DNA of 64,000 nt from Lepidodermella squamata (Eukaryota > Animalia > Gastrotricha): positions 124,001 to 188,000 of the forward strand of contig JBLDXI010000043.1 in assembly GCA_047495785.1 (NCBI GenBank), given 5' to 3'. The position numbers were made by a program, and so were the translations under genes. Shown here in pieces: positions 8,470 to 60,976 of this stretch. The notes beneath the pieces were generated by a model. That model was not told the origin of the DNA. It saw only the letters and a program-made list of their open reading frames with translations, and did no database searches. The stretch's first letter is position 1. Every line of letters starts with the position of its first letter.

Positions 8470-8481
8470 ATTTATTTGATC

Positions 8482-29392: not shown

Positions 29393-32300
29393 TGGGGGCG
29401 CGACTCTGGGAGTTCCGAAGGAACGCCAGTTCCTTTACGCGTGTTTTACACATACGCCGTAGATTACCACGAACGAAGTGAGATTTCATCCCAACAGGGG
29501 GGCCCGAGAACGCGTTGGTTAACAGGACATACTCCGATCGACTTGCCCGATTTATGGTGGTATCCTGGACCCCTCAGGACCTCCCAGAAACTTTTTCAGC
29601 TCAATCGGACCTTCCGTTGATTTTCTAGAAATTAGGACGGTTTTTACCTATTTTACCGTATTTTTTAGTCACGTGACCTGGAATGGGTAGTATACGACAG
29701 GACAGTAGGAGGATATGATAGGTACACCAAAAAACAAACCACGCTGACCAAAGCTTCCGAGCCAGCTGACAGGCTGGCCCCTCGCCCCTGGGGGAGAGGG
29801 GCCCCACAATAGCCCGCGACAAAAGAGCAAACGACAAAAAGGCAATATAAATAAAAGTCAAGGTCGATTGAAAAAACCTGCGGCAAATTGTTTGTGCATT
29901 TTGCACATTAATCTATGGGTTTACCCGTAATCGACTACGGAGAATCCGAATATGAAATCCATTTTATTATAAAGCAATGATAACCCCATGATAATCCTTC
30001 CTAAAGTTTTCTGGCTCGCGCGGCTGCGTCGCACTCGCTGAAAGAGTTGCGTAACTTTCACCACCTAACGACGCCTCGCTGAGATATGAAACTTCGAACA
30101 AGCACAACAAGGTTTTTTCCAACATGTTCAAGCTGACAGCTAGAGTTTCGCAATACAGGTTAGTCCACAAATACAGAATACTACCTTTGAAAACCAACTT
30201 CTTTGCAATCACGGCGACATTTCATTTCTTGTGAACGATCAACAGAATCATACTTATTCGTCGTTATTCAGTCGGTATTCAGTTTTCTAACCATATTTTA
30301 TCTCATCGTTCTGGTCAAAATAACCAAATTCGCTCGGAAACCAAGTTTTTCCCACCCAAAATGGTCTTACAACAAGTCGAATATGTTCTTTACAAGGAAA
30401 TGTTTCACGTCATCAACAATTTTTTATGCTATTTACTTCAACCCTGCTTAATTTTTTACAAACATCAATCAAAACTTCCAAGTAAGATTCAACATGAAGT
30501 TCAACATTTCGCAAAATACGTTTCGAAGTACTTCGAAACTTCAACTTAAATTATATTATCCAACCTTCATGTGTTGTTCTTTGCGTTCTCGTCATCAGTG
30601 ACATCGATTCTACCAATTCATGTCATTCAATTGTTACCCTAATTTTTTTTACAACAAACTCTCGAAACTTCAAACTTTCAAAACATGGTCGTAGGTTCCA
30701 ACCCGATCTCTCCTTTTCTACTCTTCAATTTGTTCTTTAACCCTCACGCATTCGTTCTTTACGTTCTCGTCATCAGTGACATCGATTCTACTAATTCATG
30801 TCTTTCAATTGTTACCCTGATTGTTCTTTACAACAACCTCTCTAGACTTCGAAACTTCAACTTAAATTATATTATCCAACCTTCATGTTTTGTTCTTTGC
30901 GTTCTCGTCATCGGTGACATAGATTCTCCCAATTCATGTCTCGCAATTGTTACCCCGATTAATTATTACAACAACCTCTCGAAACTTCGAAACTTCAACT
31001 CAAACCTTCTTGTGTTCTTCTTTGCGTTCTACTTCTACCGTACCCTAATTTTGTTACCCTAATTGTTTTTACAACAAACAACAAACTGCAAGTTGGACAT
31101 TGCAAATTAAACACATTATACACATTAAAAAAGTCACATTATACCAAGGAATCCCTGCAAGCTTATACCAATCTGCAATAATTGGTTGAATTAAGATTCA
31201 TGTGATTCGCTGAAAGAGTTGCGTAACTTTCACCACCTAAAAACTTAAGACGCCTCGCTGAGATAAGAAACTTCCAACAAGAACTTCACAATAAGGTTTT
31301 TTCGAACATGTTCAACCTGACAGCGAGTGTGTTGCAATTCAGCTTATTCCACAAATTCACAATCCTCCATTGAAAACCAACTTGACTGAATCACCGCGAC
31401 GTTTGCTTTGTTGTAAACGATGAACAGAATCATACTTATTCGTCGTTATTCAGTCGGTTTTCTATGCGTATTTCATCTCAACGTTATGGTCAATGTGACC
31501 AATTTCGTCACCTAACGGTTTGTTTACTGCTCTCCAGGCCGACAGGAGATCATAAATTGACGATAGATACAAGAGAGCAAACGACAAAAGAGCAAGTCTT
31601 ATTACTGATAAGTTACTGTCCAAGGTCCAAGGTCGTGGGTACGAACCCAAGCTCCAAGCTCTCGTTTAACTGCTCTTCATGCTCTCGCTCTCTCAACCTC
31701 ATGTTGGCGATTTCTTCGTCACCGAGTTTAATTCAACTTATTCATGTCATTCAATTGTACTCTGATCAATTCTTTCAACAATGTTCCGAAACTGTGAAAC
31801 CTCGATAGGCAGCTCGAGGGTTCGAACCCAAGCTCTCGTTTAACCGCTCCCATGCTTTAGTTCTCAGCGTAGTCGTTATCATCGACATCGATTTAACTTG
31901 TGGATGTAATTCCATTGTACCCTGCTTAATTTGTTACTCAACTTTTTTTAAAATTTGAAATATCGAAGGAAGGTCATGGGTTCGTACCCAAGCTCATGTG
32001 AACCTTCAACATCACTCAAGCTCTGGTTTAGCTGCTCTCTAATGATATCTGTCATCCTTATACTTTTGGTCTCGGAATTATTTACTAGTGATGGTTAACT
32101 AGCGTGGTTAACAGGTAATCCGAAAACTGTTAAAAAGTACTCAAAATACGTGTAGACGACTCGGTATTAAGACGGTGTGTTCCTCTTTATTTTTATGAAA
32201 CGGTCGAAGGTTCGAATTCAACCTTTCGTTCAACTGCTTTGCGATGATTTCGTTCATTCCCAAGCTCTCATTCTCGGCATTAACGTCATTACCGACATCG

Positions 32301-35263
32301 ATTTAGTTTGCACTTGTCATTCAGTCGAACCCCGCTAAATTTTGCTCTCCAAGGAATTCTTTCATCCGTATGCTCTAGTTCTCGGCTTTTTGGTCAACAC
32401 CGACATCGAATTGCCTTTTGCCTTGTACATGGTAATCAATTGTACTCTGCTTACTTATTTATAAGAATTTGTAAGGAGCGGAGTGAAAACAAGAAGCTAT
32501 TTGCCAAGTATTGCCTTTATTAATAACGAGAATATTTAATAATACAAACTGAATCAATACAGAAACAAAGATGTTTATATATGTCCATGGAATAATCTGG
32601 AACATAGAAGGTTCCAGAACAGGAAAGTTCCAGAGCATGGAAGGTTCCAGAACATAGAATGTTCTAGATCCTCACAGAATTGTCTAAAAATTTGAAATCT
32701 CTGAGTTTGAACCCTCGCTCTCGTTAAACTGCTCTCCAACGAATTCTTTCATCTGTATGCTCTCCTTCACTGCGTTATCCTCACCGGGAACATGGATTCA
32801 ACTAATCCCAGTCATTCAATTGTACTTTGCTCAATGTTTTCAAAGAATTTTGTGAACAATTGAAATTTCAAAGTAACATCAAGGGTTCGAACCCAAGGTC
32901 ACGTTAAACTGCTCTCCTATGATTTCTGTCACCCTCGTGGTCTCGTTCTCGGCGTTTTCGTCATCCACGACATCGATTTGACTGTTATGGTCAAAGTAAC
33001 CAAATTCGTTCGCAAACCAAGCATCACCGTTGTAAATATTAGCTGAAAATATTTCAGTTCGAACGTGTAGACGACGAACATCCCATATCTTGCGTCACAC
33101 GCCGCGTTCACACGCGCATGATTGAGGTTGGAACATTTCTTCTGCCACTTTGAGGTCTTCGACTTTAAAATGATAACCCTACCAGCAATCCGTGCTAACG
33201 ATTCCGTCAGCCGGGAAAAGTTCATCTTTTTCGGACCTTCATCAGCAGGAACGATTACGTCTCATAAAAAACTAGTTGTTCCCTTCCACGGTCCCGTATA
33301 TTTCGCGTTGCAGAGATTGTGGATGTTCCCCAGCCAAAATTGAGCTTTAAAGTACAAGTTCCAAACTGCCGTATCGCGCGGGATAATCACTGCAAAGGTT
33401 TACCTGCCATTCTCGTTATCACTTCTAAATAAAGTAAAACAGTCTCGTATCAGTTTCGTTGATTTTCGATTTTCACTACATTTAAGGGAAATATATAGTT
33501 GGTGCTTGACGTACCGAAAAATGAGTGTGTAGTCTGATTCAATGTTAGGGTTCGTGTTGTTCGCTTTTAGAGCGGCGTCCTTTTCAAGCTTCACTTTCCG
33601 CCCCGTTCACTTTCAAAGGAAGGTCGAGGGTTCGAACCCAAGCTGTCGTTGAACTGCTCTCTAATGATTTCTGTCAACATGTTCTCGCTGTTGGCGATAT
33701 TTCGTCATCGACTTCAATTCAACTTCAATTCAATCCTTGTCATTCAATTGTAACCTCAACAATTTGTTTTTCTAGAAATGACCGAAACTTCGGATAGTCG
33801 TTGGTTCGAACCCAAACCCTCGTTCAACTGCTCAGCAACGATTTCTTTCATCCGTATGCTCTCAATCTTGGCGTTAACGTCGTTACCGAAATCGATTTAC
33901 CTTGTACATGTTATTCAATCGCACCCTGCTTGAATTATTATGACAATTTTTTGAAAATTTGAAAGTTAAAAGGTCGAGGTTTCGAACCCAAGCTTTTGTT
34001 GAACTGCTTTGTGATGATTTCGTTCACCTTCATGCAGCCAGAAGCTCTTGACGTCTAAATGCTGTCGTTTTCGGCGTCAACGTCATTACCGAGATCGATT
34101 TAGTTTGTACATATCATTCAATCGCTCCCTCCTTCAATTTTTATAACAATTTTCTGAAAATTTGGAATTTTAAAGGAACGGCAAGGGTTCGAACCCAAGC
34201 TGACGTTCAGCCGCTCTCCAAGGAATTCTTGCATCCGTATGCTCTCGTTCTCGGCGTTTTCGTCATCAGCAACATCGATTCAACTTATCCTTGTCATTCA
34301 ATTGTATCCTGATCAATTATTTTTAATTTGTTTACCAAAATTTGAAATTCAAAAAGAAGACCGATTGTTTGTTACAACAACCTCTCGAAACTTCGAAACT
34401 TCAGCTCAAACCTTCTTTTTTGTTCTTTTTGCGTTCTCGTCATCAGTGAGATCGATTCTACCAATTCATGTCATTCAATTGTTACCCCGATTAATTTTTA
34501 CAACAACCTCTCGAAACTTTGAAACTTCAGCTCAAACCTTCTTGTTTCGTTCTTTCCGTTCTCTTCATCAGTGAGATCGATTCTCCCAATTCATGTCATT
34601 CAATTGTTACCCCGATTAATTGTTACAACAACCTCTCAAAACTTCGAATCTTCAAAACATGGTCGTGGGTTCGAACCCGATCTCTCTTTTTTCTACTATT
34701 CAAACTGTTCTTTAACCTTAACGCATTCGTTCTTGGCGTTTTGGTCATCAGCTACATCGATTCTACTAATCCATGTCATTCAATTGTTAACCTGATTTTA
34801 CAACTTTGAAATTTTACATCTTCTCGAAATAACAATACATTAACAATAATAGGAATTTACAATCAGCTACATCGATTCTACTAATCCATGTCACTCAATT
34901 GTTAACCCGATTTTACAACATCTTCTCGAAACTTTGAAATTTTATGAAAGCGAATAAATGTTCAACTACTCTTTAACGTGCATTCTTCTCAAAATATTTT
35001 CCTAGCCATTCAATAATACGTTGGAAGGTTCCTGAGCGAACCCGAAATTACTGCTTATCTATCAAGACCTAATCCGAAGAACATTCTAATTTACAATTAA
35101 ATTTCAAATGTCATCAGCATTGGGGTGAGGGGGAAGCACCGTCCCCTCCAACGACGTGGAGGGGATCTCCAAGGGGTGGTTCGAGTCCTTACCCATTACC
35201 CAGGAGAGTAGAGAAAAGAAAGAAAAGGCTAGCGCAGCGTTAGCCTTGTGGAACTCTCCTGGA
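29393..35263 (+). mobile_element. Element A: 5.9-kb non-autonomous Helitron-like copy
   Basis: First ~570 bp match 35264-35845 and last ~190 bp match ~60793-60976. The interior is diverged satellite monomers plus a decayed accessory gene. Confidence 0.85.
33075..33605 (-). pseudogene. Decayed copy of the element's Cys-motif accessory gene
   Basis: GRKVKLEKDAALK...YTLIFR, intron, FAVIIPRD...YTGPWKG and ACDARYG align with 55680-56772 and 58247-59322; 5' truncated and frameshifted. Confidence 0.75.
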
Positions 35264-36557
35264 TGGGGGCGCGACTCTGGGAGTTCCGAAGGAACGCCAG
35301 TTCCTTTACAAATGTTTTACACATACGCCGTAGATTACCACGAACGAAGTGAGATTAACATCCTAAAAGGGGGTTCTGAAATCGAGTTGTCTACTTTCCA
35401 CAACTCCGGTGGACCTGGCCGATTTATGGTAGCATCCTGAACCCCTCAGGACCTCCCAGAAGTTTTTTCAGCTCAATCGGACCTTCCGTTGATTTTCTAG
35501 AAATTAGGACGGTTGTTTCCTATTTTACCGTATTTTTTGGTCACGTGACCGGGAATGGGTAGTATACGACAGGACAGTAGGAGGATATGATAGGTACACC
35601 AAAAAACCAACCACGCTATCCAGAGCGTCCAAGCCAGCCTACAGGCTGGCCCCTCGCCCTTGGGGGAGAGGGGCCGACAAGAGATCTACAATGGGAGATT
35701 GCGACAAAAGAGCAAACGACAAAGAGGCAAATTTATAAAAGTCAAGGTCGATTGAAAATAACCTGCGGCAAATAAATTGTGCATTATGCGTATAAAAATG
35801 CAGGTTTACCCGTAATCGACTACGGAGAATCCGAATATGACATTCATTTTGTTTTATAACAACGATAATTCCTTCATAATACGAAATTGCAACGGAAGGT
35901 CTAACCGAAGCTGTCATTTTACTCCTCTCCATCCTCAAGCTATCGGTCTCGGCGTTTTCGTCATCATTGACATCGATTCAACTTGTTAATGTCATTTGAA
36001 TTTACCTTTAAACATTTCTTAGACAAATTTCCAGGGTCAAAGGTCGCCGATTTTAACCTAAGGACTCGTTCAACTGCTCTGCAATGATTCCAAGCAAAGG
36101 TCATGGGTTCGAACCCAAACTCTGGTTTAGCTGCTTTTAATGATATATGCCAACGTTATGCTGTCGTTCTCGACGTTATCATCATTACCGACATCCATTT
36201 AGTTTGCACATGTCATTCAATCGAAGTTATCCGTGTGCTCTCGTTCTCAGCGTTATCCTTATCAGGAACATGCATTCAAATAATCCCAGTCATTCAATTG
36301 TACTTTGCTCAATGTACAGAATTTTGTGAAAAATTGAAATTTAAAAGTGTTCGAAAGTGAACCCAAGGTCACGTTAAACTGCTCTCCTATGATTTCTGTG
36401 ACCCTCATGGTCTCGTTCTATATATTTATTATTAATTTATTCGTTTATAATTAAATTTATTATTAATTTTTAAATTTCCAAAGGAAGGTCTTGGCTTTGA
36501 ACCCATTCGGCGAATTTTACTACGTAATCTATAACATAATGATTACGATAAGCCAAG

Positions 36558-36995
36558 TTACAAGGCGACGACAGGATATGACGGCATTCCCGAATGCATC
36601 GTCAAGATGGCCAAGCCCTCGATTGCTCGGCACCTCACAGTGCTCTTCAACTTGGCTATTCGAGATGGCGTATTTATTGACGATGCGAAAACGGCCATCG
36701 TTACGCCGCTGCATAAGTCCGGTTCTAAAGCTGAGCCTTGCAATTTCAGGCCAATTTCGGTCACCTCACCGCTGGCTCGTACATTTGAGCGCTGCCTGGC
36801 TACACAGCTGAAGGTCCATCTACGCACGATCAAATTCCTTACGTCAGCACAGCACGGGTTTCGACAATACCATTCGACTGACACTTGTGTGGCATCATTC
36901 ACGGAATGTTGGCGTCATTTGCTCGACAGTGGAAATGTAGTTGGAGCTATTTCGATAGATCTTTCGAAATCATTCGATACGCTGAATCTCGAGGG
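36558..36995 (+). mobile_element. Non-LTR retrotransposon (CR1/L2-like) reverse transcriptase fragment
   Basis: KATGYDGIP, TAIVTPLHK, NFRPISVTS, QHGFR and IDLSKSFD; truncated before the YADD motif. Confidence 0.85.
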
Positions 36996-39590
36996 TATGC
37001 ATAGTTTCTGCCATGTCATTTAATTCTACCCTGATTAAATTTTTTTAAGAATTTTTTAAAACTTTGAAACAACGGAGAATCCGAATATGACGTTCATTTA
37101 GAGACGAATCGGTTTTCACTCTGTATGTTCCCAATTTATTCCGAAATCTTGATTGTACCCTGCTTAATTTCTTAAAAGATTTGTTTGAAAATTTTCCAGG
37201 TCAAAGAAAGGTCGAGGGTTCGAACCCAAGCGTTTGTTTACTGCTCTCCAGGCCGACAGCAGATCATAAATTGACGATAGATACAAGAGAGCAAACGACA
37301 AAAGAGCAAGTCTTATTACTGATAATCTCCAAGGTCCAAAGTGCAAGGCTCAAGGTCCACGGTTCAAGGTCCAAGGTCGAAGCCAAGCTCTCGTTCAAGT
37401 GTTCTCCAAGGATTGTGCTGTCCTGCAATTATCTGTTTCATTTTCAATTCACTATTGTCAAGCTGCTCTCTATTGGGCGTCATAGCTTTGAAATAAATAA
37501 ATAAATAATTCTGTCATCCTAATGCATTCGTACTTGGTGTTAAAGAGCAGGGAATGCGAAAAATGTTCAAAGTCAATCAAAATACGTGTAGACAATTCAG
37601 TGTTAAGGCGGTTTGTTCCTCTTTGTTTTGTTAAAATCCTGGTTATTCAATTCCACCTTGATCAATTGTTCACAATAAGTTCTCAAAATACGTGTAGACG
37701 ACTCGGTATTAAGACGGTGTGTTCCTCTTTATTTTTATGAAACGGTCGAAGGTTCGAATTCAACCTTTCGTTCAACTGCTTTGCGATGATTTCGTTCACT
37801 CTCATGCTCTCGTTCTCGGCGTTGAAGTCATTACCGATATCGATTTAGTTTGCACATGTCATTCAGTCGAAGCCTGCTTAAATTTTTATAAACATTTTTC
37901 GAACTTTGAAATTTCAGAGGTTGGTTGAGGGTTCGAACCCAAGCTTTCGTTCTACTGCTTTGCGATGATTTCGATCACTCTTATGCTCTCGTTCTCGGCG
38001 TTAACGTCATTACCGATATCGATTTACTTTGCAATTGTTATTCAATTTTAAATTTTACCGTGCTTAGTTATTTATAAGAAATTTCTAAAAATGTGAAAGT
38101 TAAGTGTTCGAACCCTCTTGTTAAACTGCTCTCCAATTCTTTCATCAGTATGCTCTAGTTCTCGGCTTTTTGGTCAACACCGACATCGAATTGCCTTAAA
38201 CATGTTAATCAATTGTACCCTGCTTACTTATTTATAAGAATTTTCTAAAAATTTGAAATATCTGAGTTTGAACCCTCGCTCTCGTTAAACTGCTCTCCAA
38301 CGAATTCTTTCTTCTGTATGTTCTCCTTCACTGCGTTATCCTCACCGGGAACATGGATTCAACTAATCCCAGTCATTCAATTGTACTTTGCTCAATGTTT
38401 TCAAAGAATTTTGAAAGAAAGAATTTTGAAAGAATTTTTCCTTTGAAGCATTAAGCTTGAACAACGAGCTTGACACAAACGAGCTATATTCAAAGGATCT
38501 ATACTTTTCTTGAACAAAACTTCAAGCAATGTGAACCTTCAACATCACTTGGGTAAAATTTTACTCTGGTCAATTTTTGTCAAGGATTTTTTCTAACATT
38601 GAAATTGAACCACTGAGGCAAGCACTCGCGTAACTGCTCACCAATGATGTCTTTCAGACTCCTGCTCTCGTTCTCGGCGTTACCGTAATCAGAGACATCG
38701 ATATAACATATCGACAAAAAGCAAACGACAAAAGAGCAAATCGTATCACTGATAAATTCCAAGGTCCAGGGTTGAAAGTCCAACGTCCAAGGTCGTGGGT
38801 TTTAACCCAAGCGACTGGGAATGATTTCGTTCGTCCTCATGCTCTCGTTCTCGGCTTTAACCGACATCGATTTATTTTGCAATTACCGTGCTTAGTTATT
38901 TATAAGAACTTTCTAAAAATTTGAAATCTCTGAGTAAGGTTAAGGGTTCGAACCGTAGCTCTTGTTAAACTGCTCTCCAAGGAATTCTTGCATCCGTATG
39001 CTCCAGTTCTCGGCTTTTTGGCCAACACCGACATCGAATTGCCTTGCACATGTTAATCAATCGTACCCTGCTTAGTTATTTGTAAGAACTTTCTAAACAT
39101 TTGAAATCTCTGAGTTTGAACCCTCGCTCTCGTTAAACTGCTCTCCAACGAATTCTTTCATCCACATTTCCACATTTTACGTTCTTGTCGTTATTGCTAA
39201 ACCGACATTGAATTAACCTGTCCGAGTTATTCAATACTACCCAGCTTGAGTTTTTTTTTAGGAATTTTATGAAAATTTGAAATTTGCGCCGCACTTGCCA
39301 AAGAAGTTGCGTAGAGGGTCAATTCCGCGTTCGGCTTTTTCCGCATGTATACTTAAACTACTCAAACTTGGGTAGGTCCCGGGTCTTTTTCTGTCTCTTG
39401 CCTATGTGTTCACTGTCATAGAGGTGACATAGGATATTTTGATAATAAAACTATCAAACTGCAAATCAAGTTTCAGTGCAGATTAATAAGTTGTTAACCA
39501 CATTTTAAAGTGAGCAGTTCAAAAACGCGCTTTCTTATCTTCATATTCATATGCGCAGATGAATAAAAGATAAATTTAAAAGATAAAAAT

Positions 39591-39667: not shown

Positions 39668-40357
39668 ATCTGACATATCCATCGCAAATCAATTTATAAA
39701 TATTCAAAGAGAAAGAAAATAATCAAAAACAGTTTCCAGCGCCTTCCGGGAATCGAAGGCATCTCAATCACAATATAGTTTGCTTCGCTTAGGCATTGGT
39801 TCGATTACTGCTCTCATCACGTTTTTCCTTTCCATTTTTTTTTCTTAAAACAGATTAATTCCTGTCCAAATTTTTGCAGAATGAGCAATAAAAGTGGAAA
39901 CTTTTCCATTCACGTGGATTTTCATGAGTACAAAGTGCATGCCTGTCATATGGCTGACACGCGATTCAGCATCAGCTGTTTAACGGCGCAGCGGCGGCAA
40001 CATAATAAGGTTCGATCGGGTATACACTAATCATTTAAAACGATTTATTTCTCCTGAAAACAACCTCTAATTCCTTAAGCATTAGAATTACTTATGCTGC
40101 CAGCTCCAATCAATCCATCTTTCGCTTGAATCGATAACAGTGTGACAATGCTGCTGTCTCAGGTTTGCTAGTATATTATTGCTAGTTCATTTCACTATTC
40201 CCACTGTGATTACAGCTACTGGATGAAATGGCGATTTGCAGTCGGCGTTGGTTTACCACGGTCACTAATTTCAACCAGAAAGCCGTGAGTACATTTTTTT
40301 CCTCATTGATTTTATTTACTATAGTAAATTTTATTGATTTTTTCATTCATAAACACA

Positions 40358-43002
40358 TTTTTACGCTCCCTAATATTTTCTTTTATCGTCATGCTCTCGT
40401 TCTCGGTGTTCTCGCGATCAGCAACGTCGATTCACCGAATCTCTGTCATTTAATTTTACCCTCATTAAATTTTTTCAAGAATTTTTTCAAACTTTGAAAT
40501 TCCAAACGAAGGTCGTAGGTTGGTGCCCGACTTCTCGTTTTTACGCTCCCTAATATTTTATTTTATCGTCATGCTCTCGTTCTCGGTGTTCTCGCGATCA
40601 GCAACGTCGATTCACCGAATCTCTGTCATTTAATTTTACCCTCATTAAATTTTTTCAAGAATTTTTTCAAACTTTGAAATTCCAAACGAAGGTCGTAGGT
40701 TGGTGCCCGACTTCTCGTTTTTACGCTCCCTAATATTTTATTTTATCGTCATGCTCTCGTTCTCGGTGTTCTCGCGATCAGCAACGTCGATTCACCGAAT
40801 CTCTGTCATTTAATTTTACCCTCATTAAATTTTTTCAAGAATTTTTTCAAACTTTGAAATTCCAAACGAAGGTCGTAGGTTGGTGCCCGACTTCTCGTTT
40901 TTACGCTCCCTAATATTTTATTTTATCGTCATGCTCTCGTTCTCGGTGTTCTCGCGATCAGCAACGTCGATTCACCGAATCTCTGTCATTTAATTTTACC
41001 CTCATTAAATTTTTTCAAGAATTTTTTCAAACTTTGAAATTCCAAACGAAGGTCGTAGGTTGGTGCCCGACTTCTCGTTTTTACGCTCCCTAATATTTTA
41101 TTTTATCGTCATGCTCTCGTTCTCGGTGTTCTCGCGATCAGCAACGTCGATTCACCGAATCTCTGTCATTTAATTTTACCCTGATTAAATTTTTTCAAGA
41201 ATTTTTTCAAACTTTGAAATTCCAAACGAAGGTCGTAGGTTGGTGCCCGACTTCTCGTTTTTACGCTCCCTAATATTTTATTTTATCGTCATGCTCTCGT
41301 TCTCGGTGTTCTCGCGATCAGCAACGTCGATTCACCGAATCTCTGTCATTTAATTTTACCCTCATTAAATTTTTTCAAGAATTTTTTCAAACTTTGAAAT
41401 TCCAAACGAAGGTCGTAGGTTGGTGCCCGACTTCTCGTTCGTTTTTACGCTCCCTAATATTTTATTTTATCGTCATGCTCTCGTTCTCGGTGTTCTCGCG
41501 ATCAGCAACGTCGATTCACCGAATCTCTGTCATTTAATTTTACCCTCATTAAATTTTTTCAAGAATTTTTTCAAACTTTGAAATTCCAAACGAAGGTCGT
41601 AGGTTGGTGCCCGACTTCTCGTTTTTACGCTCCCTAATATTTTATTTTATCGTCATGCTCTCGTTCTCGGTGTTCTCGCGATCAGCAACGTCGATTCACC
41701 GAATCTCTGTCATTTAATTTTACCCTCATTAAATTTTTTCAAGAATTTTTTCAAACTTTGAAATTCCAAACGAAGGTCGTAGGTTGGTGCCCGACTTCTC
41801 GTTTTTACGCTCCCTAATATTTTATTTTATCGTCATGCTCTCGTTCTCGGTGTTCTCGCGATCAGCAACGTCGATTCACCGAATCTCTGTCATTTAATTT
41901 TACCCTCATTAAATTTTTTCAAGAATTTTTTCAAACTTTGAAATTCCAAACGAAGGTCGTAGGTTGGTGCCCGACTTCTCGTTTTTACGCTCCCTAATAT
42001 TTTATTTTATCGTCATGCTCTCGTTCTCGGTGTTCTCGCGATCAGCAACGTCGATTCACCGAATCTCTGTCATTTAATTTTACCCTCATTAAATTTTTTC
42101 AAGAATTTTTTCAAACTTTGAAATTCCAAACGAAGGTCGTAGGTTGGTGCCCGACTTCTCGTTTTTACGCTCCCTAATATTTTATTTTATCGTCATGCTC
42201 TCGTTCTCGGTGTTCTCGCGATCAGCAACGTCGATTCACCGAATCTCTGTCATTTAATTTTACCCTCATTAAATTTTTTCAAGAATTTTTTCAAACTTTG
42301 AAATTCCAAACGAAGGTCGTAGGTTGGTGCCCGACTTCTCGTTTTTACGCTCCCTAATATTTTATTTTATCGTCATGCTCTCGTTCTCGGTGTTCTCGCG
42401 ATCAGCAACGTCGATTCACCGAATCTCTGTCATTTAATTTTACCCTGATTAAATTTTTTCAAGAATGTTTTCAAACTTTGAAATTCCAAACGAAGGTCGT
42501 AGGTTGGTGCCCGACTTCTCGTTTTTACGCTCCCTAATATTTTATTTTATCGTCATGCTCTCGTTCTCGGTGTTCTCGCGATCAGCAACGTCGATTCACC
42601 GAATCTCTGTCATTTAATTTTACCCTGATTAAATTTTTTCAAGAATTTTTTCAAACTTTGAAATTCCAAACGAAGGTCGTAGGTTGGTGCCCGACTTCTC
42701 GTTTTTACGCTCCCTAATATTTTCTTTTATCGTCATGCTCTCGTTCTCGGTGTTCTCGCGATCAGCAACGTCGATTCACCGAATCTCTGTCATTTAATTT
42801 TACCCTGATTAAATTTTTTCAAGAATTTTTTCAAACTTTGAAATTCCAAACGAAGGTCGTAGGTTGGTGCCCGACTTCTCGTTTTTACGCTCCCTAATAT
42901 TTTATTTTATCGTCATGCTCTCGTTCTCGGTGTTCTCGCGATCAGCAACGTCGATTCACCGAATCTCTGTCATTTAATTTTACCCTGATTAAATTTTTTC
43001 AA
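40358..43002 (+). repeat. Homogeneous 180-bp tandem satellite, ~14.7 copies
   Basis: Near-identical units (ttacgctccctaatatttt...aaggtcgtaggttggtgcccgacttctcgttt) with one 4-bp insertion near 41437 and a few substitutions. Confidence 0.97.
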
Positions 43003-46200: not shown

Positions 46201-49200
46201 TTCATCTTACTAGTGTAATATTAGAAGCAAAATTTACGTTTTGAAGTTTGAAAAATCATCTAGAATTAATGACATAGATAATTAATATATATGTAGTACA
46301 TTTTGTTTTACAGTGGGCAGAGTGCTGGTCATCCACCAAGGTCAATCTCAGCTGCTGACCGAATTCCAGTCATCTCGTGAGCTGCTGATGTGCCGTCCTG
46401 AAGGTGCCTTGCCGATCCAATGGCCCGCATTGCCTTTGTCGCTGAAAGCTGGTCATCACCTTCTCCTTGCCCGCGTCAAGTTTCGCCGGAAATGCTTCAT
46501 CGTTTTTCGATGGTCACCAAGCTTCAGTGGCTGGTGGACAGTGGAGCCTAGTGGGCGAGTAGTTCGTGGTGTCAGCGGTCAGCACATGCGCTTTGACGTG
46601 GAATTTGCGATATACGCTCTGCCTGGCAACCAGACCTTCTGCAATCAAGCCGTGCGTCAATCGCTGGGTGGCCAGAGCAAGGCGGCCTGCGAAATGCACT
46701 ATGACTCCGTCGAGTTCAACTTCACCTTGATGAAAGTGCCTGCCAAGCATAAGGTGAAGTGTTGCTTCCGATTGCCGGGAAGAGCAAATCAGTGCGGCAA
46801 ACCTGCTCAATTGCGTTGTCCTGCGGGCTTGCAGAATGGCAGCATGTCGTGCAGTGTCGGCATCTGCCCGCGGTGCTTCAAAAAGCTTTCAGCGAACGGC
46901 ATCACCAAGCTCTCGGCGCCCGACTTCCTGCCTGATTTGCCTGAAGATGCTGAACTGCAACTGTCAGCTAGTAGGGTATCGAACTTGGAAGCGGAAGCCG
47001 ATGAGGTCTTGCCCCAGCCTGAGCAGCTCGATTTGGCTGCTGATATTCAATTTCCTCGAGGTGAAGTCGAGCCGCTGTATGATCCCACCAAGGGAATTCT
47101 CGCCAAGTACCTATGGCAGCACCTGGGAATTCTGCAGCGAACCAGGCTGGCTTTCGACTCTGCCCAGAAGTCGTTTCTCCTGCAGCAGATGGTCGCCTTC
47201 GGTGATGCCCCTGCTACTTCCATCTTGTATCCGGAGGGTGCCCTGTTTCCGTCGCTTTTCTATTGCCAACGTGATGGCAGTGTTGTTGGTGCTCTGCCTC
47301 ACCACCACTACTCGTCGTCGACGTCCTACAATACAGGTGGGATCGGCTCACTGTCTGACCATGTCAAAGTGAGGCTTCGCAACTTCTTCTTGGCAACAAG
47401 CTGGTCGTTTGCGTCAATCTACTTCTCCTTTGACATGAAGTTATCGGCACAGCTGAACAGCAACAGCACAGCAATTTTCATGAAGCGCGGGACAGAAGGC
47501 CTGGCGGGTAAAGGCGCGGTTGGCTGGTCTCCTCCTGGCACTGTACTGGAATACGAGGAGTTCGACAAGGAGTCGAGGCTGAAGGAGCTTGGCGCCCTAA
47601 TCAAGCATGAAGAATGGAAGTGGTTCGGGACAATTACGTGCAATGATACAGGTTTGAAGAAATGTTTATAGTATTTTAGCAAATAAGTAGTATCCTGCAT
47701 ACTTCGATTAGGTAGCAATAAGGTGGTAAGCAATTTTTAAACCAAAGTTTTTGAAAGTTTTAAATTTTAGATCAGGGTCCTGGGTTCGAACCCAAGCTCT
47801 CATTTCTTGGCTCTCTAATTTTTTCTTTCATTCTCATGCTTGCGTTCTCGGCGAATTCTTCATCGGGGATTTTATTTGTAGCTGGAATAATTTTAAAACT
47901 AATTTAGGGGGAACTTTGAACTTTTAGATCAGGGTCCTGGATTCGAACTTAAGCTATCGTTTCTTGGCTCTTGGGTCCTGGGTTCGAATTCGAACACAAG
48001 CTTAATGCAAAATTTCTATTTTCAGGCACACCTGGTGTATGTGAAATCGTGAAGGCCCTCATGATCAACGCTCAAAGGCACCATGGCCCACGCCCCGTTC
48101 TGTCGAAGGCCGACTATCAGCGAACTTTTCGTCAGCGTCTGCTCCTTGTTTCAAGGCTTGACGAGACCGAGTACAAGCGGCTGTACTACGCCCATTTCAT
48201 CCTTATCAGCATGGCTTGGCAACGAGTGCAGGAGCATCTGATCGAGTTCCTGAAGCGCACGAATGTTGTTGGCACTGTCACCACTATTTTCGTCAGGAAC
48301 GAATTTCAGAGCGAATCACTCGTTGGCAACAAAAGTCATCTGCATATGGGCATTTCAGTACGCGAAAGCCGGGCAGAACTGCTGGAGAAAGTTTGCTGTG
48401 ATCCTCGTGAATTCTTCTCGGAGCGGTACGGCACGTCATTCGACGAGCTTCAGCGCTTGAGGTTGGTCGAGAGCCGAGATCACTTCGAGCTGCTCAAGGA
48501 GGTCCATTACCCCTTCCAACGTCACGAATGCGAGAAAGCGTTTTGGAAATGTCAAGTTCCACGCGGCGAAGGAGGGGAAATGGTTTGCCGAGTTCGCCAG
48601 CACGGCGTCTCCAGCAGCGGCTATTTCGAAGAATTCCGCAACCTGTACTCCGAGGATACCCTGAAAGAGCTGCAATCCCTAGACCTCGCCAGAGAAGTGC
48701 CCAATCCCACTGGCGACTTTGACTGGGAATTTCTGGCTGATCAGCTCAAGTCGGGCGTGTACCACTACGCGATCAAGCATCTCGAGAAGGGCGTGAAGTT
48801 CATTCCGCAAATCCCGATCATCGCGGCAATGATGGGCGGCTCCACGAACTTTCAGATTTGCGATTCTCATTTCAGCGTATCTTACCTGACGAGCTACGTT
48901 GCCAGCTCCGACGCTCGCCCTGAAGCTTACGCTGCAACGACAGATGTTCCGGGCCAAGTCGTTGCTTTGTTCCCTGCTGGTTTTGAGCGAGGTCAAAAGC
49001 TTGCTAGTGTTCGGTGAGTGATATCTTTGCACTTCAATTGACTTGAAAAACTTTGATGTTTTTAGGAAAGTGATGGAAGCGAAGCTGAAGCATTTCCGTC
49101 GAGAAAGCATGCAGAGCTTTATCTTCATCGCCTTGACAGAAGTTGCCTGGTTCGCGTTGGGGTTTCCCTACACCATCACGAATGTCGGTTTCGTACACAT

Positions 49201-52200
49201 CAACACACACCCACCAGCTTTGCGGCTAATGTTGTGGCGACCAAAAGAAGCAGTGAAAAAGCGACTACCGGGTATGCTCTTGAGAATAGTTATTGTAAAT
49301 ATTTTCAAATAATATTCCAAAAACAGGTACAGATGTCGTTGCTGTCGATCCAAACTACAATCGCCGGGGCCTGCCTCAGTGGCGCTTGTTCACGGAAGCA
49401 TGCATTCGTCTGATCATGAAAATGAGAGGCACGAATCTGCAAGCTGGCCCTGTCGAGAAGTTCGAGATTCGACCTCCCGAGGCTCGTATCTTTGCGTCAC
49501 CTGCTATCTACCACGCGGTGTTCGTCATTGACAGGAAAAACGGACGACCATACAACCCGATGGTTGATCCTTACATCCGTTTTTTTGACGGCTTCAAGCG
49601 GGAGGTCCGAATCAACGATTGCAGTTTGCGCATCGCGCTCGACTATCTGGCTCAGCAGGACCAATCCAATCCAGCTGTTCAAGCACTCACGGAAATTTTC
49701 GAACTCTTGGTCGAAGGCGATCCTGTCTACGTTGACCGGTAACGAACTTTACGTTTTTATAATTTTCGGAATATTTCAATTGTACGCTGAACTAGGTATT
49801 TGCACGTCACCAATAAGGCGGCGATAATTCCAGTCCTATCCACCATCTCTCCGCTCAACCGCTTCAACTTCTTGTATCACGTCGTCATGACATTTGGTCG
49901 AATCGAAGAAGAGGCTACTACCTTTCCGGCTGGGCATCTCCGGGCGGCATTTGTTCGATCGGGGCTCATTCGGGTCAATCCTGAAGGCGAGCCGACCAAC
50001 CTTCCTGCCGACGTGAGGTCTCTGAAGCGTCGCGTCATTCTCGAAATCTTCGCTTTCCTGCCAATCGGTGTCAAGAGATTCGATTTCTACGTCGCGACTC
50101 TGAAATCCATGTTCGAGCAGTTTTTCTTTGGCGATGGAGGCACCGACAATCTCTCGACACTGACTGACTGGGAAGCGATTGAACGCGAAGTTGACGAGGA
50201 TATTGTCCGAGCGGAAGGAGAAATGAAGCGGTCTGTGGTTGAGGTGACGCATTCGCAGCTTGTCGGGAAATTGCCGCTACCACCGCTGTCGGATTTCACT
50301 GACGCTACGTCGTGTCAACCTTTGGAATGGGTTCCGAGTCTTCAACGACAACCAGGTCAGTCGGACCAGTCTTTCCAGGAGCAGCAGGCGGCTCTGGCTT
50401 TCGGTACGAAGACACTCGAACGCTTCCGAAGCAGAGCTAGCTTCAAGCACATCGCACTGGTTGGTCCTCCTGGGGCTGGAAAGACAACGCTGGCGCAGAT
50501 CCTTGCCATGGTTGCCGTTTCTAAGGGACTACGAGTTGTCATTACTGCTTTGACCTCGGAGCGAGCACGAGTTCTTGGCGGTCGGCACATCCACCTGCTT
50601 TTTCCTTTGCCGGTTAAGCAAATACCGTACAAGAATGTAATGGCGTATGCTGACGGCTGCCTCAAGAATCTGTGTTTCAAGACTACGCCATCTGTTGTCC
50701 TATATCGGGCTGACGTCTTCATCATCGAAGAAATTGGGCTGGTCTCTGCTGAAACCCTGGAAATCTTGGACACAGTTATGAGGAGTCTTACAGGTAAGCA
50801 AACCAGCATTCAATTATTACTGGTATTTATAGTTTTCATTAGGAGTCGATGCGAAAATGGGTGGCAAATTGATCATTGCTACCGGGGACTTTGCTCAGCT
50901 CGAGACGATCAATGGTGAGAGTTGATTTATTGCAATACTCACATGTATATTGTTTTTGTTTTAATTATCCCAGGTCGATCCTTTTGGGAATCAACACAAT
51001 TGTACCTCAGCTACGACGTCGCATTGTTGAAACATTTCGTTCGGGCTGCCACTGACCCGCTACTCCAGCGGGTGCTGTTGATTTTGCGCCAAGCCATTCT
51101 TGACGAGATTGACCGGGACTTCATCCTCAAAGCTGTCACTAGCACGTGCACCTTTTACGACACTTGGGACAATGTTCCGTTCCTTGTCCAGCGGATCGTC
51201 CCAACAAGAGAAGCTGAACAAGAGGTTAGTTAGTTGCGGAAAACTTTAGTGGTCAATTTTAGTGCCTTTCATGCAATAATTCATCAGGTCATTCGGAAGT
51301 TCCTGCAAGACGCTAGTCTCAGTGGCAAGACTTTGAAAACAGCTCTGTGCATCGACGAAGTGAACACGCGTGGTGCCTGGGAACCTCTTCACCGTCCCGA
51401 ATGGAAAAAAGCTATCAACAAACAGTCACTCAAGCCCGAGAACTTAACCCTCTTTGTTGGTGCTGTGGTTGCTATGACCTACAATCACGTAGCGTCGAAC
51501 CCGCAACATTCCTTCTCCCAAGGGCAGCTAGCTCTGGTGACGCAGTTGCCGGAAGACATGGCCGCACCGGATGCCAAAATTTCTGTCCGCTTGCTTCCTC
51601 CAGGGCTGCGTGACATTGCACCAGATGAGGCTTGGCCAGAAATAAGTGTGGGCCGCCATCGGGACGATAACATTGTTGTTGGCGACAACAAAACGCACCT
51701 GCGTCGTGTTCAGTTTCCGCTGCGGCATTACATTGCCTCGACTATTCATCGTGAGTGCTAACCTTGTTTTTATATTCAAGTATATAAAGATGTTAATTGT
51801 TTTCAGGAATCATGGGTTCTACCTGCGAGAACGGCGTTGCGGCCAAGATTGCTTCCAACCAGAAGGTACGTATTGCGAATAATAACTGTGGATATTGATA
51901 TGTTCAATGTACTGTAATGAAGGGCTACGTGCTATGGGAACGGGCGCAGCTTGCTGTCATTCTCTCGCGGTGCCGTTCACTTGACCGTGTGTCATTTGTT
52001 GGCGAACGCGCAGACATCACTGTGGCCATCGAAAGGCTGTTGATGGCAGTTGATGAGCCATACGAGGCTATCGTCGCATCGCTGCAAACGCTGGACGTGC
52101 TGCCTAACTCAACAGTCGCCAGTAACTGGTCAGCCGGACGACAGCAGCAGGTCAGCGTCCCCGACGAACTGCCCGACATCACGTTCCGCGTTTTACGAAC

Positions 52201-53058
52201 AACTTCCGGGTTAGTCCACTTACTTATTTGGCGCTTTGTATAGTCAACTCACTGATTGCGTATGTCCCATTATATATAGAGTCTTGACAGTTCATATTTC
52301 TATAACCATTTTACTATATTTCAACTTAGAATAAGTCGAACGTTTTCAAGAAACATTTTTCTTATAGATCATTCACGATCGAGCAGCTTGGCGATGCTCA
52401 AACTTCCATCCCATTGTAAGTATGGCATTGTTCATCTGCTTTATATACTATTCAAAATTTCTTCATAGGCCTGCAACCGCTGACCAGGCAAGCTCCTCCG
52501 ATGCGCCTGTTGTCCCACGGTTAGTATAACCTATCAATTCCTTTTCATTGCTTCAAATTCTTCTCAACTCATCAGAATGCCGACATTGCTAGACTTTTAC
52601 CGCGTCGTTGGCCCTGATTTGTCGGAACGCGAGCCCAATGGCTTCGTGTACCAATTGGTCCAGGTGGCTCAGCCGTGGGTCAGCTACTGCGGCGAAACTG
52701 AGCAACCGCCTCTAAAGCGACTTTACGACCACAATCACAGTAAATACAAGAGAGACTAAAAAAATCGAACTGCTAACATTTGATTTCAGATGCAGGGGCC
52801 GCGATGACTCGCGGCAAGCAATGGCATTTGTACGCCGTCGCTCGTGGCTTGCCTGATGACGAAACCAGGTTGAACCTGGAGAAAAGGTGCCAGGACCTTA
52901 TTACAGCGCAACCTGAGCTTTTGCCGTGGCAAGTTAGGACCAAGTTTGAGTCCTACGTGGACGAAATCAACGCTCGCCTGCATGGGTCCACTGCTGTAAT
53001 TCGTTACGGCGAGTTAGACGAGGCTAAGGTTCACCGCCTGCGTACGATCTCCTTGTGA
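43250..53058 (+). CDS. Multi-exon (~23) Helitron-like Rep-helicase with N-terminal Zn fingers and a C-terminal GIY-YIG endonuclease, roughly 2,600 aa
   Basis: Rep motif 1 WFGTITCN (~47620), motif 2 RNEFQ...KSHLHMG (~48295-48350), motif 3 SYLTSYV (~48880). PIF1 motifs GPPGAGKT, FIIEEIG, GGKLIIATGDFAQL, FVRAATD, QFPL...STIHRIMGST, AQLAVILSR. GIY-YIG motifs GFVYQL..SYCGET..KRLYDHN..GAAMTRGKQW..LNLEK. Confidence 0.85.
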
Positions 53059-53920: not shown

Positions 53921-54348
53921 AGGTCAGTAAATTTCATTCATATTGTACTACTATAGATTAGACTAGCCAGAATTAGCACTGCACTGATTTGCTATCCCCT
54001 TGACCTTACTTTGAAACTTCAATTTTTCACAAAACTCTTCAAAAACATTGAGCAAAGTACAATTGAATGTCTGGGAATAGTTGAATCCATGTTCCTGATG
54101 AGGATAACGCTGAGAACGAGAGCATACGGATGAAAGAATTCGTTGAAGAGCAGTTTGACGAGAGCTAGGAACGAACCCTTAACCTTGCTGAGAGATTTCA
54201 AATTTTTGGAAAATCTTGTAAAAAACTAACCAAAACTAAGATTACGGTAACGCCGAGAATTAGAGGATATTGAAGCTTCACTTTGCTGGAAGTTTGTTTA
54301 AAACAAACGATCCTTTAAGCTTTCAGCTCGTTTGCTGCGATGTCGTTA

Positions 54349-55432: not shown

Positions 55433-55679
55433 TAAGGCGGTAAGTTGTAAAAATTGAACATTTGCTTGCAACTTTTTACCAATTTTTCAGAATTCATCTC
55501 GCCAACAATTGTTCGCCGTCGTAACATTCCGGGTGGTATTTTCTAACACTGAACTATCTTCTGCTAGAAATAAAGTTGAATTTTTGTCTTCAATTAACGT
55601 TTTTCTTGAAATAAGCAATAAACATTTTTTTTAAATAGTGTTCAATAAATTTAGTTTTGTCACTAAGAGTTCAGTTAAC

Positions 55680-56772
55680 ATGATGAATCAAATCGCCGCT
55701 AAACCGTAATTTTTCTACTCCGTGTCTTTTCTCGTTTATTGCGGTTTTTTCATAGGTTGCCTAAGCTGATTGCCATGCTACGCCAGGGCGACCCTGTGAA
55801 AGTACGTCAAGCGGTTGTTGACGATGCGAAATACATACCCGTCACACTGCATGAAGCCATCGACAGGAGCAACGAGGATGCACCTGGGAATTTCAAGTGT
55901 GTCGCTCAGCTGCTGCATGTGCGTTTCAAGCCGGGTCGCAAAGTCAACGTCAACTCCAAGGACTCGATCTTAAAACAACGCACTCCTCCCGAAATTATAA
56001 CGGAATTCACGTTCATTTTTCGGTAAGTCACATTAGAAATAACATTAGAAAAGTTGGTGTCTCAAAAATAACGCATCATGCTAGGCTGGATCGTGAATTT
56101 GAAGACGCCGCTTTCGCGGTTATAGTTCCGCGCAACGACATCACTTCATATGTCTTGCATTTTAAGCAAGAGTTGCGACTTGGTGCCATGGCTTGTCTTG
56201 CCAATCCCAATTATCTGGGTCGGTGGAAAGGAACACAGGTTTTCACGGTCGAGTTGATTCTTCCTGCGGCAGCCAGTCCGCTCAGGCATAATCTTCTGCC
56301 AAGAAGCGGTTCCCTTAGCCTCGAAAGTTGGCAAGGGTTTCGGTTGGAGGTGAAGCGCGTCACCGTCGTGCAAGTTCTGTTTCACGCCGAGGCTTGCTGC
56401 TTGCCAGCTTGCGACAGCCGTTACGGCCTGGACTGCTTTTGCAATACCATGAGTGTTGCCAAACCGCTGCTCGAACTATTTGCAGTGAGGTTGAAGGCGA
56501 AAGAACTCGGCCCTGTGGCGACTGAACCATACTCGTCCCACAAATTAGCCCTCCAGTTGCTTCCCGAAGCACTGGTCAAAGGCAGAGCTCCTCGCGATTT
56601 GGAGAGGATTGAGCAACACGTTCAGAACGCTATCGGGAACCATGTCGGCGGCTTCGTTGTCACCCTCTGGTCTAAGCCTGTTCACTGCGGTGATAGCCGT
56701 GTTGCTCAATACACCCGTCTTCACGTCGTCGACCTGGAAGTTCGTGGTGAACTGCTCATGATGGAATTATAG
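55680..56772 (+). CDS. Accessory protein of unknown function with a C-x4-CD(S/G)RYG-x2-C-x-C motif (3 exons)
   Basis: Exons ~55680-55705, ~55756-56022 and ~56085-56772 with GT-AG introns join in frame; full-length similarity to the paralog at 58247-59322. Confidence 0.75.
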
Positions 56773-58246: not shown

Positions 58247-59322
58247 TCACGGGTCGGCCATTCTAGCCAGTGGTTCACCTAGAACTCGTAAGTGCGCAAG
58301 ATGAACCTTCGTGAACGTTGAAATGTCTCCTTTTTCTGCCGCCACTGGCTTTGACCAAAGTGTTGCCTCGAAACCTCCGTCATGATTTCTAAACGAATCA
58401 AGAATATGATCCTCCATTCCCAACAGATTGCCAACTATGCGTCGTTTCAATCGGTTCTCGCTGAACAACATCTTTGCGAGGCTTACCGAACAGAAAGGTT
58501 CCGTAGCAACTGGGCCCAGTTCATCCGCTTTCAGACGGAGTGCGAAAATGTCTACCAGAGGTTCCAGCGTCTTCTTTTTCATGCAGTAACATTTCATTCC
58601 GTACCGGCCATCGCACGCGGTCTCAGGGCATGTTTGCGGAAAATAACTTATATCAACGATTTCCAAACCTGCAAGCCGCACTCGATAAGTTGTCCATGAC
58701 TCCAGACTGAGGGTCCCGTTGGCAGGAAACATGTCAAAGTGAACAGGGAAGAGTGGTGTAGGTACTATCACATCACTTGAAAACGATCTATTCCCACTCC
58801 ACGGCCCGATCCATTTTAAGTTGGGCAGCAAAACAATACCGCCGAGAGTAAAAAACTTACTGTAGTACATTGTAGTTGCAGTGGCTTCATCCTTCGACAC
58901 AAGAATGACAAAGGTCGTTGACTCGGCTGTATCCGTGCTAATTAAATATAATACGGACATAAGAATAGTGACATGAAAATTAAAATGCAAAAAAGTGTAA
59001 AACAATGGATGAAAAAAGTTTACCGAAAAACGAGAGTGTACTCGGCACTCCTACTTTCTTCAACTTTCAATAGTTTCGACGACGGTGGAAAAGATTTCAG
59101 CACATCGCCGCGGTTTATTTTCACTTGTTTTCCTGGTTTGAAAGAGACATGGACGAGCTGGGCCAATACTTTAAAATCTCCCGGAATATTCGAATTCTCG
59201 CGTTCAATTGCTTCACTAACACCAACCACTGGGTAACGCCTGTCATCAAGCACCAGGTCGCGCACGTCTTCACCGCGGCGCAGAAGAACGCTCAGTTTGG
59301 ACAGCCTTGCCTTACCTGACAT
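58247..59322 (-). CDS. Second apparently intact accessory-family paralog, convergent with the first
   Basis: MSGKARLSKL...VLAQLVHVSFKPG...YTLVFR, intron, ...GPWSG...LSLESW...CPETACDGRYGMKCYC...ELGPVATEPF...TLWSKPV. Confidence 0.75.
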
Positions 59323-59709: not shown

Positions 59710-60792
59710 CTCAATCACGTATTGCCTTGTTCATTTTAATCAATTGTACCCTGCTTAGTTATTTAGAAGAATTTTCTAAAAAAAACCCTCGCTCTCGTTA
59801 AACTGCTCTCCAACGAATTCTTTCATCCGTATGCTCTTCACGGCGTTATCCTCACCGGCAACATGCATTCAATTAATCCCAGTCATTCAATTGTACTTTG
59901 CTCAATCTTTTTAAAGAATTTTGTAAACAATTGAAATTGCGAAGCAACATGAAGGGTTCGAACCCAATGTCACGCTCTCCTTAACTGCTCTCCAAAGTTT
60001 TCTTTCATCATCATACTCTCGTTATTGGCGTTATTTGGTCACCGACTTCAATTCAACTTATCCTTGTCATTCAATTGTAACCTCAACAATTATATTCAAG
60101 AAGTTTCCAAAACTTTGAAACTTCAATGCAAGGTCGTTGGTTTGAACCCAAACCCTGGTTTAACTGCTTTGCATTGCTTTCTTTCATCGTCATGCTCTCG
60201 TTCTCGGCGTTATTGTAATCACCGACATCGATTAAACTTATCGACAAAAAGGAAACGACAAAAGAGCAAATCTTATTGACTATGAATTTCAAGTTCCAAG
60301 GTCCAAGGTCGGGGGTTCGAACCCAAGCTATTTAAATTTAAGCGTATCAAGCTAAATTCGAAAAAATGAATATTTTTATGAAACTGGAAAATTCATAGGA
60401 AGGTCATGGGTTCGAATGATTTCTATCATCCTCATGCTTTCATACTCGGCGTTGTCATCATTACCGACATCGGTTCAACTTGTCGAAGCTATTCAATTGC
60501 ACCTTGATCCATTTGAAATTCCAAAGAAAGGTCGTAAGTTCTAATCCAAGCTCTCGTATTGATTGAACTCTCAATAAGGTAGTGAAGGATAGTCTTTGGT
60601 TCGAACCCAAACCCTCGTTTAACTGCTCAGCATCGATTACTTTCATCCGTATGCTCTCAATCTCGGCGTTAACGTCATTACCGACATCGATTTAGTTTGT
60701 ACATGTCATTCAATTTTGTCATGTCCCTGCTTAAATTTTTATAACAATTTGAAAATTTGGAATTTCAAAGGAAGGTCAAGGGTTCGAACCCA
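59710..60792 (+). repeat. Diverged satellite monomers next to the 3' end of element B
   Basis: Same gggttcgaaccc / atgctctcgttctcggcgtt / gtcattcaattgta motif order as 30.5-39.3 kb. Confidence 0.8.
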
Positions 60793-60976
60793 GGAAGAAC
60801 ATTCAAATTTACAATTCAATTTCATATTTCATCAACATTGGGGTGAGGGGGAAGCACCGTCCCCTCCAACGACGTGGAGGGGAACTCCAAGGGGTGGTTC
60901 GAGTCCTAACCTATTACCCAGGAGAGTAGAGAAAAAGAAAAGGCTAGCGCAGCGTAAGCCTTGGAACTCTCCTGGA

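Follow-up and report, generated by a model that had tools for sequence, protein, structure and literature searches.

A probable head-to-tail pair of Helitron-superfamily elements, one carrying a Rep-PIF1-GIY-YIG transposase gene, in a coding exon of the gastrotrich Lepidodermella squamata

A 64,000-nucleotide stretch of the genome of the gastrotrich Lepidodermella squamata (assembly GCA_047495785.1, contig JBLDXI010000043.1, positions 124,001 to 188,000 of the forward strand; this whole stretch is "the window" in what follows, and positions are counted from its first letter) holds a block, 29393-60976, that interrupts a protein-coding gene. We read the block, with a probability of roughly 0.85, as a tandem of two rolling-circle transposons, a 5.9-kb non-autonomous and a 25.7-kb autonomous member of the Helitron superfamily, inserted without a target-site duplication (TSD) into a coding exon of a host endoplasmic reticulum protein and representing a sparsely sampled clade. 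What places it in that superfamily is a Rep protein with HUH and two-tyrosine (Y2) motifs, a PIF1 helicase fused to it, the lack of a TSD, a subterminal hairpin at the 3' end, and a partner with common ends. The element belongs, in other words, to a known kind of rolling-circle system; its clade is barely described.

The insertion is a clean case of recent gene disruption. When 29393-60976 is removed, the two halves of a minus-strand exon rejoin in frame with no duplicated bases. The rebuilt host gene consists of a 67-nt exon 1, a 56-nt GT-AG intron and exon 2, and encodes a 320-amino acid (aa) protein without stops that has an N-terminal signal peptide and a C-terminal KDEL. The element's ends can be shifted by 2 nt at most (GA); a 2-bp duplication is ruled out, since taking it away would break the host reading frame. 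An earlier reading of the window from its letters alone (the sequence-only reading) had proposed an exon rebuilt without duplication, with a 2-nt GA ambiguity and no TSD: the in-frame 320-aa open reading frame (ORF) bears out the first two, and restoration of the exon the third, at this site. A search for homologues of the host protein found none, and the junction is thus uncheckable against orthologous proteins.

An uninterrupted relative of the host exon exists. Sequencing run X2 (which carries another organism label and is probably RNA) contains a 121-nt contig, ~91% identical to the host exon, that follows this exon up to 29393 and then continues with window sequence from 60998 onward, reading ...CCTTGA-TCTTCTGATTGC. 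Positions 60977-60997 (21 nt) are missing from it, which leaves the frame intact and falls within a repetitive acidic stretch; the missing segment repeats the neighbouring TCTTCTGATT. These 21 nt are probably a host in-frame indel; they may instead be filler made at insertion. The homology break therefore confirms the position of the left edge with a precision of +/-1 nt, and that of the right edge no closer than 21 nt. The empty allele that the sequence-only reading thought might turn up in another haplotype or a relative has a possible counterpart in the uninterrupted relative in X2, which matches at the left edge and lacks the 21 nt at the right.

A separate observation comes from run X1, the run in which the locus is best represented. 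There the host flank also occurs in another version, which has three substitutions within 13 nt (29346-29358), at a depth of 62.8 of 103.3; the substitutions are the same as in X2. Either this version is a paralogue, or it is a second allele that has diverged strongly and may be the empty one.

The insert itself is double. The window has just two copies of the 24-mer that opens it, starting at 29393 and 35264, and just two of the 14-mer that closes it, with their last bases at 35263 and 60976; two matches were never reached in shuffled sequence, for either motif. The insert therefore consists of two abutting units, A and B (Table 1), with zero bases between them, and the claim that both units start alike and end alike stands. 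The first 46 nt of A and B are identical and hold a small hairpin, GTTCC-GAA-GGAAC; the units also have scattered satellite units in common. A long ORF was looked for in unit A, and none was found: with B's ends and no long ORF, A fits the non-autonomous partner foreseen from the letters alone. The label "giant" that came with that proposal has been dropped; such a size is ordinary for Helitrons.

Unit B carries a Rep-helicase (RepHel) gene that is apparently intact and has all its catalytic motifs. Its splice sites were picked using a profile hidden Markov model (HMM) built from 23 full-length relatives, and this family HMM spans aa 20-2261 (1,512 bits) of the product plus the GIY-YIG part at aa 2329-2401. 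Twelve of the introns measure 49-63 nt, two 107 nt, one 158 nt and one 374 nt; this last, at 47652-48025, separates Rep motif I from the remaining Rep core. The HLHMG and YLTSY motifs match the invariant H, H and Y and the near-invariant second Y of a 30-sequence alignment, and the alignment of relatives places a Cys/His-rich insert between the HUH and two-tyrosine motifs. The family profile matches Helraiser, the bat Helitron transposase (PDB 7LCC), at E 1.7e-6 over exactly the Rep motifs. An AlphaFold2 (AF2) model of the Rep (pLDDT, its confidence score, 81) matches the HUH nuclease domain of Helraiser along 190 residues in VIA-align, with a Z of 10.1, the next chain reaching only Z 3.7, and the top match in an ESM Atlas shape search is a Helitron_like_N cluster. 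The helicase lies C-terminal to the Rep within the same 2,452-aa ORF; it is recognized by Pfam PIF1/AAA_30, its profile fits Helraiser as well as it fits PIF1 structures (E about 1e-25), and its GDFAQL motif sits in a 72-nt exon at 50843-50914. The C-terminal domain retains its GIY-YIG motifs (GFVY, YCGET, R..HN, LE), and its profile matches SLX1 at E about 1e-6. Pfam alone, applied to the window ORFs, had yielded a weak P-loop/PIF1 signal and no Helitron_like_N. The Rep-PIF1-GIY-YIG enzyme proposed by the sequence-only reading is thus supported.

In gene orientation the termini are laid out as host ...CCTTGA / TGGGGGCGCGACTCTGGGAGTTCC ... GGAACTCTCCTGGA / GAGTTG... host (a slash marks a junction): an A flanks the 5' end, the first bases of the element are TG, and its 3' end is CTGG plus A, followed by a flanking G. 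The compound hairpin at the 3' end has a perfect 10-bp stem (60918-60927 with 60966-60975) that encloses a second hairpin, AAGGCT...AGCCTT (60940-60962), which ends nine bases before CTGG (60972-60975); the final A is at 60976. The 142-144-nt terminal modules fold with z-scores of -3.3 (B) and -4.7 (A), and none of 200 shuffles is as stable.

Table 1. Features of the interrupted host gene and of the inserted elements (positions in the window)
Feature	Position	Strand	Remarks or basis
Host exon 2, downstream part (KDEL and stop)	28578-29392	-	ORF continuity after deletion; X2 contig; cut between 29392 and 29393
Unit A	29393-35263	+	5,871 bp, non-autonomous; common ends and degenerate satellite units
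5' terminal region common to the units	A: 29393-29983; B: 35264-35868	+	~600 bp, 86% identity
Head-to-tail junction	35250-35287	+	3' end ...GGAACTCTCCTGGA directly touching 5' end TGGGGGCGCG...
Unit B	35264-60976	+	25,713 bp, autonomous, carries the genes
180-bp satellite	40355-43002	+	14.7 copies, 99% identity
Rep-PIF1-GIY-YIG gene	44278-53058	+	17 exons, 16 GT-AG introns, intact 2,452-aa ORF
Rep catalytic core	47624-48897	+	Alignment of relatives, profile, fold match
Rep motif I, FGTITCND	47624-47647	+	Alignment
HUH motif, HLHMG	48337-48351	+	Alignment
Two-tyrosine motif, YLTSY	48883-48897	+	Alignment
PIF1-type helicase	50463-50738	+	Walker A GPPGAGKT 50463-50486, Walker B region 50721-50738
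SLX1-like GIY-YIG nuclease	52576-53058	+	Last two exons, 52576-52739 and 52790-53058
Accessory gene, paralog 1 (Cys-motif protein)	55739-56772	+	Paralog alignment
Accessory gene, paralog 2	58247-59322	-	Convergent with paralog 1; 39% identical over about 187 aa
3' terminal module common to the units	A: 35076-35263; B: 60794-60976	+	~188 bp, 92.5% identity
Compound 3' hairpin	60918-60975	+	Folding analysis; last 58 nt
Host exon 2, upstream part	60977-61057	-	Spliced translation
Host intron, 56 nt	61058-61113	-	Spliced translation
Host exon 1, with signal peptide	61114-61180	-	Spliced translation; exon 1 to exon 2 part spans 60977-61180

Where, among rolling-circle transposons, does the tandem belong? 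Canonical Helitrons (HLE1) begin with 5'-TC, end with CTRR-3' and insert between A and T (A/T), and Helentron/Helitron2 elements insert at TT. Neither rule describes this site: the element begins with TG, ends with CTGG plus A and lies between A and G, and a T/T target is found on neither strand in any placement within the 2-nt ambiguity, at this single site. To that extent the termini are non-canonical, as the sequence-only reading had it; they are not wholly alien, in that the A of the 5' flank, the T of the first base and a 3' hairpin ~9 nt before a CTRR-type CTGG are all shared with HLE1. Also shared with HLE1, of which Helraiser is an example, are the fusion of an HUH/Y2 Rep to PIF1, the fold of the Rep, the lack of a TSD, non-autonomous partners with common ends, and head-to-tail arrays. 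What differs, beyond TG in place of TC, is the extra A after CTGG, a 3' flanking G instead of T, the C-terminal GIY-YIG domain, the Cys/His-rich insert between HUH and Y2, and a marginal likeness to Helitron_like_N.

The alternative that survives best is that the element is an HLE2 (Helentron/Helitron2) of a subgroup with mirror-ordered ends ("HLE2-reverse"), with GIY-YIG replacing the apurinic/apyrimidinic (AP) endonuclease; the target other than T/T would then be the noise of a single case, and there would be no separate lineage. Helentron-like elements typically carry internal tandem repeats, as unit B does, and hairpins at both ends, short end complementarity and an extra endonuclease domain after the helicase are further points in common. 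Seen from the minus strand, the element opens with T+CCAGGAGAGT: the repeat is set 1 nt in from the end, and its pairing with downstream bases makes a 5' hairpin like that of the terminal inverted repeats of asymmetric type (ATIRs) in Helitron2, which lie near the 5' end with a hairpin and of which the element here is the mirror image (PMC3627910). Some known HLE2 families have their gene in the reverse orientation and a stem-loop at the 5' end, and a GIY-YIG domain occurs in HelenSM92, an HLE2 family from Sphagnum (PMC11417382); the one sentence on HelenSM92 in that paper is the only mention of GIY-YIG in a Helitron-like element in the literature searched. Several differences stand on the other side: 1) the inverted repeat is 7-9 bp, versus 12-16 bp in HLE2, and is not significant; 2) the hairpin comes before, not after, the right repeat; 3) the target is not T/T; 4) the nuclease is SLX1-like GIY-YIG and not an AP endonuclease (Exo_endo_phos); 5) DUF6570, which HELIANO uses as its HLE2 marker, is absent from the window ORFs even at E<=10. 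The relatives of the transposase also speak against HLE2, and assignment to it appears a real possibility that falls short of an even chance.

These relatives were collected by an exhaustive phmmer search with the Rep ORF over 1.84 billion representatives, which returned 123 matches, the best of them 35% identical. Domains were scanned in roughly 29: the 23 long relatives and the six weakest long matches. In the 23, PIF1 is present in 21, Helitron_like_N in 18, and GIY-YIG above threshold in nine; DUF6570 is in none (0/23). The Helitron_like_N matches are marginal, around the Pfam cutoff, the best at 2.7e-8. Four of the six weakest have PIF1 with Helitron_like_N or GIY-YIG, one has Helitron_like_N only, and one is without a Pfam domain. 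No canonical Helitron is among the roughly 29, and a homologue search with the helicase region for reference Helitrons returned only the same Rep-PIF1-GIY-YIG family. The relatives with names are a protein of the tunicate Styela clava (XP_039257388) with several paralogues (71-91% identity), one from the ostracod Cyprideis torosa (CAD7227800) and one from the amphipod Hyalella azteca (LOC125177549); the remainder are metagenome contigs with the JGI label "predicted GIY-YIG superfamily endonuclease". These database proteins have the same end-to-end collinear architecture as the window protein, its Rep motifs, an invariant H..C...C...CR insert and intron-rich genes; they differ in that Rep-domain identity to the window protein is <=35%, and the comparison is one of proteins, without described ends. 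The marginal Pfam matches, the lack of DUF6570 and the single architecture among the scanned relatives make it plausible that Rep-PIF1-GIY-YIG proteins mark a distinct lineage.

Two observations on Cyprideis torosa may be set beside these. In this species, the source of the closest relative that has a name, contig L001 has tandem repeats with periods of 89-463 nt at 3891-16124, upstream of and inside the Rep-helicase gene; private satellites may be a habit of the Rep-PIF1-GIY-YIG family. In a comparison of two 85%-identical copies, a repeat from the 3' side is found right next to the 5' region that they share, at L002 ~1294 (...TTCTAAC/GTCAACCC), where a region homologous to L001 sequence downstream of the gene adjoins that 5' region. 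This may be a head-to-tail joint in Cyprideis; hairpins that would support it were looked for, with none found, and the site sits in repeats.

More distant likenesses concern the mode of movement. IS91/ISCR and IS200/IS605 elements are analogous in their single-strand rolling-circle or peel-and-paste transposition, and they insert beside a short specific sequence related to their own cleavage site. They differ in being prokaryotic and in having no fused helicase or nuclease, whereas the Rep here is clearly that of a eukaryotic Helitron. In Replitrons (10.1101/2022.12.15.520654) the Rep has a single tyrosine and is not fused to a helicase; the two tyrosines and the fused PIF1 helicase of the window protein rule out that identity.

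A scheme for transposition can be drawn from Helitron biology. Rep would make its nick at the 5' boundary (flank ...GA / TGGGGG), in the strand with the sense of RepHel, the PIF1 helicase would peel this strand off in the 5'-to-3' direction, and the compound 3' hairpin together with ...CTGGA would mark the cut that ends the process. What is then pasted into a nicked target would be the single strand or a circle whose junction reads CCTGGA/TGGGGG; the joint between A and B has just the sequence expected of such a circle junction. A role in nicking the second strand or the target has been proposed for the AP endonuclease of Helentrons, and here the GIY-YIG domain would probably supply that nick. 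Both units lie directly 3' of CCT(T or G)GA: the host flank, TCCTTGA, and the element's own end, TCCTGGA, are one base apart. Since the flank resembles the element's 3' end, the enzyme may accept look-alikes of its own cleavage site, and target mimicry of this kind (a CCTKGA look-alike), which we offer as a hypothesis, would explain both the insertion next to an end and the tandem itself. The tandem would most likely have arisen by one unit landing exactly at the other's end, with later co-mobilization, through read-through of A's terminator, as a possible sequel.

Might the pair instead have moved into the host exon as one 31.6-kb composite, the transposase having read through A's 3' terminator and stopped at B's, and the likeness of target to end be a coincidence? 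Terminator bypass is known Helitron behaviour, the junction between A and B is seamless, and there is only a single host site. Against a composite, the ends of A and B differ by 7-14%, so that these are distinct subfamilies that were once joined by precise insertion, and the host flank and the 3' end agree at six of seven bases; single-step arrival of the composite is a real possibility, though less likely than not.

The landing of one unit at a look-alike of the other's end can also be taken much further. Rep-PIF1 with an SLX1-type GIY-YIG would then be a third deep lineage beside HLE1 and HLE2, choosing its target by mimicry of CCTKGA/ and perhaps reading it by pairing with an arm of the 3' stem; the guide sequences with which IS200/IS605 elements read their sites offer an analogue for such pairing. 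We regard this larger proposal as improbable. If true, it would make this element a eukaryotic HUH transposon that selects its sites, one whose ends are known and whose enzyme is intact.

That the block was not integrated by a Rep-helicase at all, being an assembly mis-join or the work of another recombinase, for instance a tyrosine recombinase of Crypton or DIRS type with a circle as its substrate, is very improbable: head-to-tail multimers without a TSD would also fit circle integration, two of the element's genes have no assigned function, and no X1 contig spans the junctions among the matches listed, but a recombinase or integrase domain was found in no ORF, the host ORF is restored exactly, the ends are identical at three boundaries, and the RepHel gene is intact with all its catalytic motifs.

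Other points weigh against the tandem Helitron reading as a whole, or against parts of it. It is the reading frame and the junction between the two units, and not the X2 contig, that place the right edge of the insert; the X2 sequence, ~9% different elsewhere, may come from a paralogue and not from an empty allele. The transposase gene is a prediction from genomic sequence and the family profile, and Foldseek found no match to the Rep model in the PDB. The end-to-end inverted repeat is an exact 7-mer, GAGTTCC (9 bp with one mismatch), that is reached in 327 of 5,000 shuffles; a significant terminal inverted repeat is not supported. The evidence on abundance has its own limit: summed word depths in run X1 (about 1,500-1,850 for the ends, ~350 for A-specific parts and ~100 for the host flank) are contig depths, not copy numbers, although together with several internally deleted variants of the element in the same run they point to a multicopy, recently active family. 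Target mimicry has as its basis one host site and the internal junction. Finally, we infer the mechanism and the target rule, because neither a transposition event nor a circle nor another site of insertion turned up.

What else does the element carry? Besides the main array (Table 1), degenerate copies of the satellite lie at about 30400-39100, at 53997-54169 (inverted) and at 59800-60700. Two satellite-like units with the palindrome GGGTTCGAACCC are found within the 374-nt intron of the transposase gene: the element's repeat has invaded an intron of its own gene. Derivation of the satellite from the terminal modules was considered and rejected (local alignment score 17, against a shuffle maximum of 15). 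A tRNA-like reading of the 3' module and the satellite, on the strength of GGTTCGA-type motifs, was likewise given up after ARAGORN and Rfam had both come back blank. Just upstream of the transposase start, at 43865-44152, is a Cys-rich 95-aa ORF with splice-like borders and no Pfam match, which may be an extra, zinc-finger-like 5' exon of that gene. The internal satellite and the accessory gene family of the sequence-only reading are both there, the latter as two paralogs. Searches for the paralogs' function were blank in Pfam, in atlas features (best 0.69) and in a word-indexed homologue search, and an AF2 model (pLDDT 35) led to no family, homologue or fold. Exact look-up of ten window ORFs in the sequence collection found no other copies; the 5' 24-mer had 0 matches in a metagenome scan; and neither loose ends nor contigs of run X1 across the insert junctions are among the matches listed.

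The neighbourhood of the host gene has features of its own. A 207-nt inverted repeat (23317-23523 and 24575-24781), its arms 100% complementary and 1,051 nt apart, adjoins a perfect 97+97-nt palindrome at 24977-25170; the two together resemble a further mobile or foldback element of young age. Ankyrin-repeat genes with 102-nt coding repeats lie at 4285-6579, 18384-19196, 21788-22603 and 27648-28247, and an ORF for a dynamin-family GTPase at 8428-11223.

For the GIY-YIG-bearing clade of Helitron-like elements, this locus provides the first ends placed at near base level, within 2 nt. It adds a circle-like junction of end to start, a pair of autonomous and non-autonomous elements, and an apparently intact, intron-containing transposase gene. 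The clade thereby becomes testable, by cleavage of defined oligonucleotides, by detection of circles and by genome-wide logos of the flanks; and one data point is gained on how the rules for Helitron ends (TC/CTRR, A/T, T/T) drift.

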